In this document: positions 4,326 to 7,867 of the stretch, piece by piece | Position numbering within the stretch: position 1 is the stretch's first letter | Layout of the letters: each line of letters begins with the position of its first letter | Assembly: GCF_016433145.1 (NCBI RefSeq) | Contig: NC_058133.1 | Coordinates: 189,960,306 to 190,024,305, forward strand | DNA from: Gracilinanus agilis | Taxonomy: Eukaryota | Direction of reading: 5' to 3' | Length of the DNA stretch: 64,000 bases | Program-made: the position numbers and the translations under genes | The notes under the pieces: model-generated | Told to the model about the DNA's origin: nothing | Database searches by the model: none | The model's input: only the letters and a program-made list of their open reading frames with translations

Positions 4326-7300
4326 ATGGTCCCCCCAGGGAAGAAGCCAGCCGGAGAGACTTCCAACTCGAACAAGAAATGCAAACGCTATTTCAACGAG
4401 CACTGGAAAGAAGAGTTCCCTTGGCTGGAGTTTGACTATGAGCGAAAGCTGATGTTTTGCTTGGAGTGTAGGCAAGCCCTTGTCCGGAATAAGCATGGCA
4501 AGGCAGAGAACGCCTTTACCGTGGGCACCGACAATTTTCAGCGCCATGCATTGCTGCGCCATGTGACTTCTGGGGCTCACCGCCAGGCCTTAGCTGTCAA
4601 CCGAGAACAGCTGGCATTTGAAGGTTGGGCAGGGGGAAGTGGTGGGTACCACCGAAACCTGCCCCTGCACTCAGCAGGCATGGCTGCCGCCTCCTCCATA
4701 GCGCCCATCAAGGTGGAAGTGAACCCTGCCAAGGTGGCTGTGCTGACCACTGTTTACTGCATGGCTAAGGAGGATGTGCCAGATGACCGCTGCCCTGCTC
4801 TACTGGAGCTTCAGAGATTCAACCTTTGCCAGGCACTCCTGGGCACCGAGCATGGCGATTACTACAGCCCAGGCAGCGTGAAAGACATGCAGGTGGGTGG
4901 TTGATATTCTAGGGGTAGAGTGAGAAGGGAGGAAAATGCTTTCCACACACTACACAGACTCCTTGGATGTCAAGCCACTGGGCAGAATCCTGGGCTTCAG
5001 GCCACAGCTCTTATCCTGAGGAAAAGGTGGATAGAATAGGTCCTCTCCCCCCACCCCCACTCAGTATATATTCTACTGCCCCCTTGGGAAATGAGAAGGT
5101 GCTTGGATAATAAGATCGTGGACTTAGAGCTGGAAGGGACCTTGAAAGTCATCCATCCTTATTTAAGAGGAGGAAACTGAGAACACCAAGGGTTAAGTGA
5201 TTTCCTCAAGGTCACACAGGTAGCAGGTGGCCCAGCCAGTATTTGACACTAGATGTTCTGACCCCAGATCCAAAGCTCTCTCCATTGCGTTGGCTGGAAA
5301 ACTAACCCTTCAGTGCTCTTCTCCAACTCCCCCCCAAAATACTTTATGAATTACTGCTTCCCCCTACCCCCTCACCCCGACCAATGGAGGATATGAGCTT
5401 TTACTTGATATGTTTACTTGACTTTTCTCAAAATGGTGCTAAGGGCCATAGAGAATGAAACTTTCTGGCATTAAAATATGTTTTATAAGAAAAACTCTTA
5501 TCAGCAGTGGCCTTCATTTTTTCCTTGCCTCCCCATGCCCAGTGTTTTGCTCCATAAAGAGGTACCAGCTTTATCTTCCCAATCCTAGCTTTTGGAGAAG
5601 GATGGAGAGAAGCAGGAACTTTGTGGTCTCTGCTGTTGATTTGCAGATATATCTTCAGGAAAGAAAATATCCAAGAACTGACTTGTGTCCTGAGGCATTA
5701 ATTATTATGGGCAGAGAAGATGTAACCCCTGAACTTGAGGATGGCCAGTCTAATGGGAACGACATGATGGGCCACCCCTGAGGAACTTTCAGTCTGATTA
5801 AAGGGAAGGGGAGGGAATTCAAAGTCATTAAGCACCTACTATGGGGATCAGTTAGGTGGCTCAGTGGATTGAGAGCCAGGCCTAGAGAAGGGAGGTCCTG
5901 GGTTCAAATATGACCTCAGATACTTCCCTATTGTGTGATCCTGAGCAAGTCACTGAACTCCCATTGCCTAGCCCTTACTGCTCTTTTGCTTTGGATCCAA
6001 TACTCAGCATTGATTCTAAGACATAAGGTAAGGGATTAAAAAAGAGAGAGAGAGTGCCTTCTGTGTACCAAGTACTCTGCTAAGCACTTTACAAATATTA
6101 TCTCACTTGATAAACCCTTCAGAAGTCATTTTTACCCTCTCCCTGTCTCTGCCCAGGGAAGGTCCTTCATCAATACCAGGTAGACTGGACCTTCCTCTAG
6201 CCAGGAAATCAACCTTGCTTGTCCTCCTCAGTGCCCTGTGGGTATCACGAAAGTTGTCCCTCCTACTGAACTCTTCATCTTCCTGTTTCTGGGTAGTTAA
6301 ACTGAAGCTTTTCCTGGGATATGCTTAAACCCCTCCCTTTCTTTCTTTCTTTCTCTCTCTCTCTGACTCTTCCCAGGCAGCCATTGCCAGGGTCCTGCAC
6401 TCTGAAGACCACCAGCGGCTGAAGGCATCCCCATTTGTGGGACTAGTGCTGGATGAGGTTGGGGATGGTCCAGAGCCTCATAGCCTGGCCCTCTTTGCCA
6501 CCTCGGTGTCCCCCTTTGATGGTCAGCCCGCCAGCACCTTCCTAGGAAGTGTGGAGCTAGCGGTAGGGGAGACCCCAGCTGGCCAGCTTCTGGACATTCT
6601 GAAGTCCTTTGGTGTGCCTGCGCCCAAGCTGGCCTGGCTTGGCTCAGGACTCCCAAGTGAACGTCTAGGTGACCTAGGCCTACAACTTCGGGTCACCTGC
6701 CCGCTGCTGGCCGAGCTCCATTGCCTTCCGAGCCGGGGTCACTCAGAAGCCCCTACCTATGTGCGCGAGTACGAGAGTGTTCTGGATGCCCTGTTTCGAC
6801 TCTATGGCGGCTCTGGGGCCCACGGGGTCCCAGAGCTCCGGGCAGCACTGGACCTAGCAGCCGTCAATCTGACAGGACCACAGAGGGTGCCCTGGGCATC
6901 TGTTTTGCCAGCTGTAGAAGCTGTGGCTGCCTCCTGGCCTCAACTTGTGCCCATGCTAGAGGCTTCTTCCCCCACTTCTCCACCCACAAAGGCATTGGCT
7001 CTTGCCCTCCGGCGGTTCACCTTCATTGCCTTCACCTACCTCCTCTTGGACATTTTGCCCACTCTACAGAAGCTCAGTCTCCTTCTTCAGCCTGAGGATC
7101 CAGATTTGGCCTTGCTCCAGCCCCTGGTCATTACCACTGCTGCCTCCCTGCAGGCTCAGAGAGGCTCAGATGGACCCTATTTTCAAAGCTTCCTGCAGGC
7201 ACTGGCCACCCCAAGCCCAGCTAGCAATGGGGATGGTGACCGCTATTGCTATCAAGGTGTGGAGTTGACAGACTGCTCCCCAGCCACTATCCAGAGCTTT

Positions 7301-7867
7301 GAGGACCTCCGGGGGTCTTTCTTGGCCTCTCTCAGGAGAGGCCTGTGGGACTCCTTCCCAGGTCCCTCTCTGGACATTGTGGCTGCATTCGCTTCCATCT
7401 TTGATGGTCGACGCTACCCACAGTCCTTAGAAGAGCTGGGAGCCCACGGGGAAGGAGCTCTTCGGTTACTGCTCCGGGCATATGCCTCTGTGGTGGTTGG
7501 TGAGAGAGCACTGAGTGACTTCCCACTCTTTAAACGCATTGTCTTCAGTTTGGGCCGGCTGGGCCCAAGAGACCTCTGCTGCAAGCTAGTCTGTGCCCAC
7601 TCAGAGTTACATGAGCTCTTTCCTGACTTTGCCATCCTGGCTTCGCTAGTCTTGGTCCTTCCTGCTGGTGCCAGCCTTCTTGACAAGGTTGCCCGAAGCC
7701 GGGAGCTTCGGTGGTGGGACCAGGGAAGGGGAGAGGGAGGTGATGGCCAGGGGAACCATGTTGTGAAGATTGCCGTGGACGGCCCTCCACTCCACGAATT
7801 CGACTTTGCTTTGGCCATTGAGTTGTTTGAGAGCGGTGGTGGTGGGTTGGAATTTTTGGGCACGTAG
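4326..7867 (+). CDS. C17orf113: C17orf113 ortholog: TTF-type zinc finger plus degenerate hAT transposase domain, 685 aa
   Basis: Exons 4326-4892 (ATG; ends CAG|gtgggt, phase 0) and 6377-7867 (cccag|GCA; TAG). Translation [50 protein letters not shown]...[22 protein letters not shown] closely matches human C17orf113 as recalled; synteny with ZNF385C-NKIRAS2-DNAJC7 agrees. Confidence 0.93.
5845..6045 (+). mobile_element. SINE1_Mdo-like SINE in the C17orf113 intron
   Basis: taggtggctcagtggattgagagccaggcctagag...gtaagggattaaaaaa. Confidence 0.85.

Follow-up and report, generated by a model that had tools for sequence, protein, structure and literature searches.

C17orf113 of the opossum Gracilinanus agilis, a probable domesticated hAT transposase gene with an apparently decayed active site, next to ZNF385C

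Several hAT transposase systems, both mobile and domesticated, offer points of comparison for C17orf113, the gene described here. Hermes, a hAT element of Musca domestica (PDB 2BW3, 4D1Q, 6DWW and 8SJD), has an active D/D/E site, terminal inverted repeats (TIRs) and target-site duplications (TSDs). The mammalian gene ZNF862 is a KRAB-hAT fusion that belongs to the same broad hAT clade as C17orf113, and the transposons nearest to it are given as hAT-1_SK and hAT-6_BF in the supplement of Cosby et al. (bioRxiv 10.1101/2020.05.07.082677). Genes of the Buster/FAM200/ZBED5 type, which bear DUF4371, have been domesticated in a similar way as single-copy host genes. Here, we examine the C17orf113 locus in a stretch of 64,000 nucleotides from the opossum Gracilinanus agilis (assembly GCF_016433145.1, contig NC_058133.1, positions 189,960,306 to 190,024,305, forward strand), which we call the window and within which all coordinates are counted. 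With a probability of roughly 0.75, we read this locus as the orthologue of C17orf113 and its product as a domesticated hAT transposase that is non-catalytic in therian mammals and functions through its zinc finger and scaffold.

C17orf113 is already named and annotated, its function being undescribed. Public annotation calls its products 'transmembrane' or 'uncharacterized', many orthologues are automatically named 'ZNF862-like', and one gar isoform bears the UniProt label 'HAT C-terminal dimerisation domain-containing', so that databases already show the hAT link for one orthologue at least. In the literature library that was searched, the only mention found was a human variant in a table. 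The gene is absent from the available text and supplements of the main survey of vertebrate transposase captures, which lists ZNF862 (bioRxiv 10.1101/2020.05.07.082677). An earlier note, made from the letters of the window, had proposed an intact, uncharacterised and domesticated hAT transposase gene, and this proposal finds support in the relatives of the protein, its sequence motifs, its predicted fold, a conserved intron and the selection acting on it.

The gene consists of two exons with 685 codons in an intact frame, encoding 685 amino acids (Table 1), which agrees with the open reading frame (ORF) and the intron of the earlier note; the motifs quoted there (the C/C/H/H finger, the Asp at 6452, ELHCLPSR, WLGSGLP, LLDKV and the C-terminal motif) likewise lie where it had placed them. 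Exon 1 starts with an ATG in a favourable context, the 10 amino acids at this start codon are kept between coelacanth and mammals, and the intron runs from a donor CAG/GTGGGT to an acceptor AG at 6375-6376. The protein encoded by exon 2 is identical at 495 of 495 positions to XP_044528371.1, the NCBI model for G. agilis named 'transmembrane protein C17orf113 homolog', and shares 97% identity with Monodelphis, 90% with the wombat and about 70% with eutherians; the ORF is not a chance one, because exon 2 matches both this model and the wombat protein so closely. The exons of the window were searched and compared one by one, and the full-length fold was made from the wombat database protein.

A simple domain scan cannot check the hAT assignment, because the core of the protein falls below all models. 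At E<=1, exon 2 has no match in either Pfam or NCBIfam, none of 23 orthologue cores reaches E<=0.1 against the hAT Pfam models, and neither exon 2 alone (phmmer) nor a profile of 24 orthologue sequences finds a match among PDB sequences. A profile built from the 23 orthologue cores and searched against 1.84 billion representative proteins retrieves 4344 of them at E<=1e-3 and 195 at E<=1e-30. Right beneath the orthologues lies a tier of proteins of about 690-760 amino acids (E 1e-81 to 1e-34) that carry the finger zf-C17orf113, DUF4371 and, above its gathering score, Dimer_Tnp_hAT (PF05699); its members include proteins of the hemichordates Ptychodera and Saccoglossus and of amphioxus (Branchiostoma), under the labels 'C17orf113-like' or 'ZNF862-like'. 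Homology to proteins bearing PF05699 is thus significant transitively, the window protein itself having no direct match to PF05699. One of the relatives (P0107) is encoded by an uninterrupted ORF of 698 codons on short contigs and has precomputed matches to PF27073 (FAM200-ZBED5_RNase-like). A TIR search around this intronless relative returned short pairs at chance level, which leaves the mobility of the transposase-like relatives without support. The core profile also matches an 805-amino-acid protein of the streptophyte alga Chlorokybus atmophyticus (P0237, from EukProt) at E 2.7e-35; taken at face value, the hAT clade is therefore not limited to deuterostomes, the alternatives being a contaminated record or horizontal transfer.

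The sequence motifs agree with this placement. When 59 sequences are aligned jointly, the relatives contain the blocks DE(S/T)TDI, (S/T)DGA(S/A)VM, HCxAHR, RW(L/F) and CERGFS (alignment consensus DE..D, SDGAS.M, HC.AHR, RW and ER.FS) and a C-terminal motif x-I-x-x-EGP-x4-FDF, and the C17orf113 sequences align to every one of these blocks.

The third line of evidence is structural. The AlphaFold model of exon 2 from the window, made with the deeper alignment, has a mean predicted local distance difference test (pLDDT) score of 86.6 and a predicted template modelling (pTM) score of 0.87. It runs in the order strand-strand-strand-helix-strand-helix (strands at residues 21-28, 36-44 and 51-60, helix 67-77, strand 85-90 and helix 94-105 in exon 2 numbering), followed by a long all-helical insertion and C-terminal helices, that is, an RNase H-like fold broken after strand 5 by a large all-alpha domain, as is the hallmark of hAT transposases. 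Foldseek returns 12 matches at E<=1e-3, each of them to Hermes transposase (E 3.7e-6 to 2.8e-4, template modelling scores of 0.45-0.51), the first match to another protein being ISCth4 at 1.2e-3. VIA-align likewise places Hermes first, with Z 18.0 over 374 residues (model 1-470 against Hermes 152-605), ahead of ISCth4 (Z 11) and retroviral integrase cores (about 9), so that the comparison with Hermes proposed in the earlier note favours its assignment. An independent full-length model of the wombat protein gives the same ranking, with Z 15.1 for Hermes; this model is poor, having been made from a shallow alignment, with a pLDDT of 59.9 and 185 N-terminal residues unmodelled. C17orf113 is thus predicted still to fold as a hAT transposase, and three independent lines, namely transitive homology, motifs and fold, agree on its hAT origin.

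The gene in the window shares with the C17orf113 orthologue group its PF25431 finger, its similarity to named C17orf113 proteins, its locus and its intron position. Protein orthologues were found in coelacanth, three amphibian orders, squamates, turtles, birds, echidna, marsupials and eutherians, and the same two-exon structure and intron position are present in gar, quail, guineafowl, two bats and the opossum. In a maximum-likelihood tree, 25 orthologues form one clade with a support of 100 (Shimodaira-Hasegawa-like approximate likelihood-ratio test, SH-aLRT) and a branching order that matches the species tree, while a ZNF862-like protein and a 'C17orf113-like' protein of a ray (P0222) fall outside it. 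ZNF385C lies downstream of C17orf113 on the same strand in both the window and the wombat, and in gar, two bats and two birds the gene model of ZNF385C encloses C17orf113. From the shared clade, intron and ZNF385C synteny between gar and mammals it follows that the insertion predates the split between ray-finned and lobe-finned fishes, which took place more than 400 million years (My) ago. These data show C17orf113 to be a single syntenic host gene kept since the bony-vertebrate ancestor; with syntenic orthologues in gar, coelacanth, amphibians, sauropsids and monotremes, it is far older than the marsupial-eutherian split to which the earlier note had dated it. The branches of the tree differ in length, the stems of mammals (0.37) and therians (0.41) being long and the coelacanth, turtle and bird branches very short or slow; the losses of His, second Asp and Glu discussed below fall on these long stems.

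No TIRs flank the gene within 2500-9500, as the earlier note had reported, and the combination of TIRs and an 8-bp TSD that marks a mobile hAT element is not present. The only long inverted pair in this interval, of 152 nt and 75% complementary, has one arm upstream of the gene (3294-3445) and the other in its intron (5853-6004); it looks like two opposite copies of a dispersed repeat rather than transposon ends.

Exon 1 encodes a zinc finger (zf-C17orf113, Pfam PF25431; residues 31-93, E 8.5e-13), with a secondary weak Pfam match to the Spin-doc zinc finger (E 0.048). The earlier note had called this finger TTF-type, which is the name of a SMART family (SM00597), and Pfam assigns it to PF25431. 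Its likely CCHH ligands are C45 (4458), C48 (4467), H79 (4560) and H85 (4578), preceded by W27 and W33. All six residues are invariant in the orthologues and in 12 transposase-like relatives, and this clade-wide retention indicates a CCHH zinc site. Residues 1-95 as a whole are nearly the same from coelacanth through mammals.

Purifying selection acts on the transposase-derived coding sequence. Ratios of nonsynonymous to synonymous substitution rates (dN/dS, omega) were calculated per exon by the method of Nei and Gojobori (NG86) for Pipistrellus and Myotis, for quail and guineafowl, and for the opossum against bats. Between the two bats they are 0.13 for exon 1 and 0.23 for exon 2, at a dS of 0.20-0.25 and an intron divergence (Kimura two-parameter distance, K2P) of 0.14; between the two galliforms they are 0.11 and 0.08, at a dS of 0.25 and an intron K2P of 0.15. 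The values for the opossum against bats (0.08-0.09 for exon 1, 0.15-0.16 for exon 2) are indicative only, since dS exceeds 1. Whole-exon values thus range from 0.08 to 0.23, and not near 1, the value that the earlier note had named, together with absent expression, as counting against its reading. By segment, the range is 0.015-0.48: omega is 0.02-0.08 in the zinc finger, 0.10-0.15 in the N-terminal half of the RNase H-like fold, 0.02-0.12 and 0.18-0.48 in the first and second parts of the insertion domain, and 0.015 in galliforms and 0.23 in bats for the C-terminal region.

The most serious rival to this account makes the ORF an alternative 5' module of ZNF385C, that is, an ancient host-transposase fusion in which the finger and part of the transposase are joined to matrin-type zinc fingers. 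It draws on the position of the ORF directly 5' of the ZNF385C exons on the same strand, on the nested gene models described above and on predicted NCBI models from cetaceans and bats (P0072-P0076 and P0084-P0087) in which exon 1 and a portion of exon 2 of C17orf113 are connected to exons of ZNF385C; some marsupial products are also named 'ZNF385C isoform' by NCBI. However, the cetacean and bat fusions are predictions, the frame of 685 codons is conserved in full, its own stop codon included, between gar and mammals, and the region beyond the fusion donors is likewise under selection (segment omega 0.02-0.48). Moreover, the internal donor of the bat type follows AYLG, where the opossum has TYVREYES (6740-6790), which we read, from the opossum codons, as a putative loss of the donor. 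We consider it unlikely that the ORF is primarily such a module. For the Dromiciops isoform P0093, the N-terminal 68 residues have no match among the sequences of this analysis. A further, still tentative possibility is that C17orf113 and ZNF385C are a functional pair more than 400 My old, kept in part through read-through, alternative splicing or shared regulation. If so, the standalone protein and the fusions, which combine the finger and the N-terminal half of the core with matrin-type fingers, would have distinct roles.

Returning to C17orf113 as a domesticated transposase, the residues of its active site indicate what may have been lost. The complete D, D, E triad together with HCxxH and the Trp, as expected of an active hAT transposase, is not present in the window. 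All 16 therians compared (5 marsupials and 11 eutherians) have kept the first Asp and the Trp, have lost the second Asp through a deletion of 3 residues, carry Asp in place of the Glu and lack the second His of HCxxH. In the region of the second Asp, therians read WL, a gap of three residues and GSGLP, where the relatives have SDGA(S/A)VM and the coelacanth WLSSDGSSLM. In every orthologue, Lys replaces the Arg that follows the catalytic Glu position and the GFS motif is absent. Outside therians the site varies: D, D and E are all kept in the coelacanth, a toad, a caecilian, some turtles and many neoavian birds, and at least one catalytic residue has been lost in galliforms, squamates, tuatara, axolotl, woodpeckers, a tinamou, gar and echidna. 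In a set of 28 non-mammalian orthologues, conservation of the second-Asp column stands at the 8th percentile and that of the Glu column at the 28th, whereas neither the Trp nor the Lys that follows the Glu varies, which argues that selection maintains the scaffold rather than the chemistry. The earlier note had described a rewired catalytic triad; its observation of a broken site stands, and the low conservation of the second-Asp and Glu columns makes 'decayed' a better description of a site that is no longer maintained. On these residues, the therian protein probably no longer cuts DNA. Residual catalysis in non-mammals was considered as well and is unlikely, the columns of the second Asp and the Glu being among the least conserved.

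The same residues bear on the notion that the protein is still a nuclease or recombinase, working through an altered acidic site formed by D26, D436 and another acidic residue. Both of these Asp residues are invariant in 16 of 16 therians, the hAT Trp is invariant, and several non-mammals have the full triad; nevertheless, the strand-loop of the second Asp is 3 residues shorter in all therians, which also lack the second histidine of HCxxH, non-mammals show some of their weakest constraint in the columns of the second Asp and the Glu, and the change of Arg to Lys and the loss of GFS extend to every orthologue. We regard an enzyme of this kind as very improbable. The NCBI name 'transmembrane protein C17orf113 homolog' would make the product a membrane protein, and a hydrophobic stretch does exist in exon 2 (residues 214-236; 7016-7084). 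That stretch is modelled as one helix of a helical region, within the span 1-470 aligned to the soluble Hermes, and no signal peptide is evident by eye, no dedicated search having been made; we give a transmembrane protein hardly any credence, the name being probably an artefact of this hydrophobic helix in the insertion domain. A relic transposon in decay, its frame open by chance, to which the core without a Pfam match and the lost catalytic residues could point, is refuted by a frame intact in all orthologues found over more than 400 My, by an almost invariant finger and by the dN/dS of 0.08-0.23 at the synonymous and intron divergences given above, and has next to no probability.

The history that we propose for C17orf113 as a domesticated hAT transposase would begin with the insertion of a hAT transposon, in sense orientation, in or beside ZNF385C of the bony-vertebrate ancestor. 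This founding element would have belonged to a clade of transposases with a zf-C17orf113 finger, an RNase H-like core of the DUF4371/FAM200-ZBED5 type and a hAT C-terminal region. The gene has since lost its transposon ends, gained an intron and been kept under purifying selection, and its active site is no longer maintained. In the present protein, the CCHH finger would recognise a specific nucleic-acid target, self-association would be mediated by the transposase scaffold and the C-terminal hAT region, and the basic N-terminus would send the protein to the nucleus. C17orf113 may accordingly act, as ZBED proteins and ZNF862 are thought to do, as a nuclear DNA-binding factor that is dimeric or oligomeric.

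Several points weigh against this account. DNA binding, dimerisation and nuclear location are all properties that we infer, and so is the therian loss of activity, which is deduced from residues. The link to hAT transposases is one of transitive homology and predicted fold, exon 2 and the 23 orthologue cores being without a direct match in Pfam, NCBIfam or PDB. The coelacanth, toad, caecilian and some turtles and birds have retained D, D, E, HCxxH and W, so that sequence alone gives no ground for extending the loss of catalysis to the family as a whole. As to expression, sequencing runs of a related organism, their type guessed as RNA, contain about one quarter of the words of the stretch.

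Table 1. Positions of C17orf113, its domains and active-site residues, and the neighbouring gene ZNF385C in the window
Feature	Position	Strand	Description
C17orf113 coding exon 1	4326-4892	+	189 codons; basic N-terminus, zinc finger, linker, start of DUF4371-like region
Zinc finger zf-C17orf113	4416-4604	+	Pfam PF25431
C17orf113 intron	4893-6376	+	Spliceosomal, GT...AG
C17orf113 exon 2	6377-7867	+	496 codons, then TAG at 7865-7867; hAT transposase-derived core
RNase H-like fold, N-terminal half	6434-6691	+	AlphaFold prediction; aligns to Hermes and to catalytic cores of integrases
First catalytic Asp, D26 of exon 2 (GLVLDE)	6452-6454 (GAT)	+	Retained
Lost second catalytic Asp site (WLGSGLP)	6635-6655	+	3-residue deletion
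HCxxH(R/K) remnant ELHCLPSR	6713-6736	+	Second His lost
All-alpha insertion domain	6752-7591	+	AlphaFold prediction; splits the RNase H-like fold, a hAT hallmark
Conserved hAT Trp, W173 of exon 2	6893-6895	+	Sole invariant column in 59 aligned sequences
Third catalytic position, Asp436 (LLDKV)	7682-7684 (GAC)	+	Glu of CERGFS in the relatives
C-terminal 14-amino-acid motif	7766-7807	+	Common to the transposase-like relatives; inside their Pfam hAT dimerisation region
ZNF385C coding exons	11920-18399	+	Found by tblastn; neighbour of C17orf113

The splice junction of the gene can be drawn in two ways, since the donor GT (4893, 4897) and the acceptor AG (ending at 6376 or 6380) each occur in tandem and allow two in-frame junctions, either of which yields 685 amino acids: junction 4892/6377 gives A190 and junction 4896/6381 gives V190. 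The NCBI model for G. agilis carries V190, which implies junction 4896/6381, and junction 4892/6377 (ATGCAG/GTG... joined to ...CAG/G) is the form seen in gar, quail, guineafowl and two bats. An upstream in-frame ATG at 4173 would add 51 residues (4173-4325) that are not conserved in other species; the resulting 736 amino acids equal the length of the UniProt Monodelphis model. Shortly 5' of the gene lies a TG/CA dinucleotide repeat (3760-3830), within a spurious ORF (3637-4008). Elsewhere in the window, the earlier note had suggested that the protein might recognise hAT-derived ends at 16563 and 47581. Nothing obtained here favours this suggestion: the interval 16300-17000 is without an inverted-repeat pair, and just two short pairs (13-14 nt) were found in 47300-49100.

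With C17orf113, the list of domesticated hAT genes in vertebrates gains one of its older members. Its hAT identity provides testable hypotheses, namely sequence-specific binding by the finger, self-association through the C-terminal region and absence of catalysis in therians. That catalytic residues were lost repeatedly, in particular lineages, from a scaffold that is itself strongly conserved offers a clean example of selection shifting from chemistry to architecture, and the conserved nesting with ZNF385C is a possible case of ancient transposase capture.

Among chondrichthyans, proteins named 'C17orf113-like' (Narcine P0222 and Heterodontus P0208) have a related hAT core, whose active site is degenerate, and closely resemble C17orf113 in the C-terminal motif. 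They are not orthologues, as they lie at another locus, away from ZNF385C, and the Narcine protein branches elsewhere in the tree, from which P0208 was left out. In Narcine bancroftii (L008 1-26573), the 'C17orf113-like' gene adjoins a CENP-B_N/HTH_Tnp_Tc5 module, and in the horn shark the two are fused in a protein of 1037 amino acids; since this module comes from a pogo-type transposon, a hAT core has here been joined to a pogo DNA-binding domain.

Compared with the described systems, C17orf113 shares with Hermes the same predicted fold between the helix preceding strand 1 and the C-terminus, at about 10% identity, whereas Hermes has a BED finger in place of zf-C17orf113, and therian C17orf113 has Asp, a deletion and Asp where Hermes has an active D/D/E, and no transposon ends. 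The Buster/FAM200/ZBED5-type genes are linked to it through its relatives, which carry DUF4371 and precomputed PF27073 matches, but the C17orf113 orthologues score below all Pfam models of this type and have a different N-terminal finger. The name of ZNF862 recurs around C17orf113, the nearest non-orthologous relatives being the Saccoglossus and Branchiostoma proteins that NCBI calls 'ZNF862-like'; with a ZNF862-like protein placed outside the C17orf113 clade, ZNF862 represents a separate domestication within the same broad group of hAT transposases.

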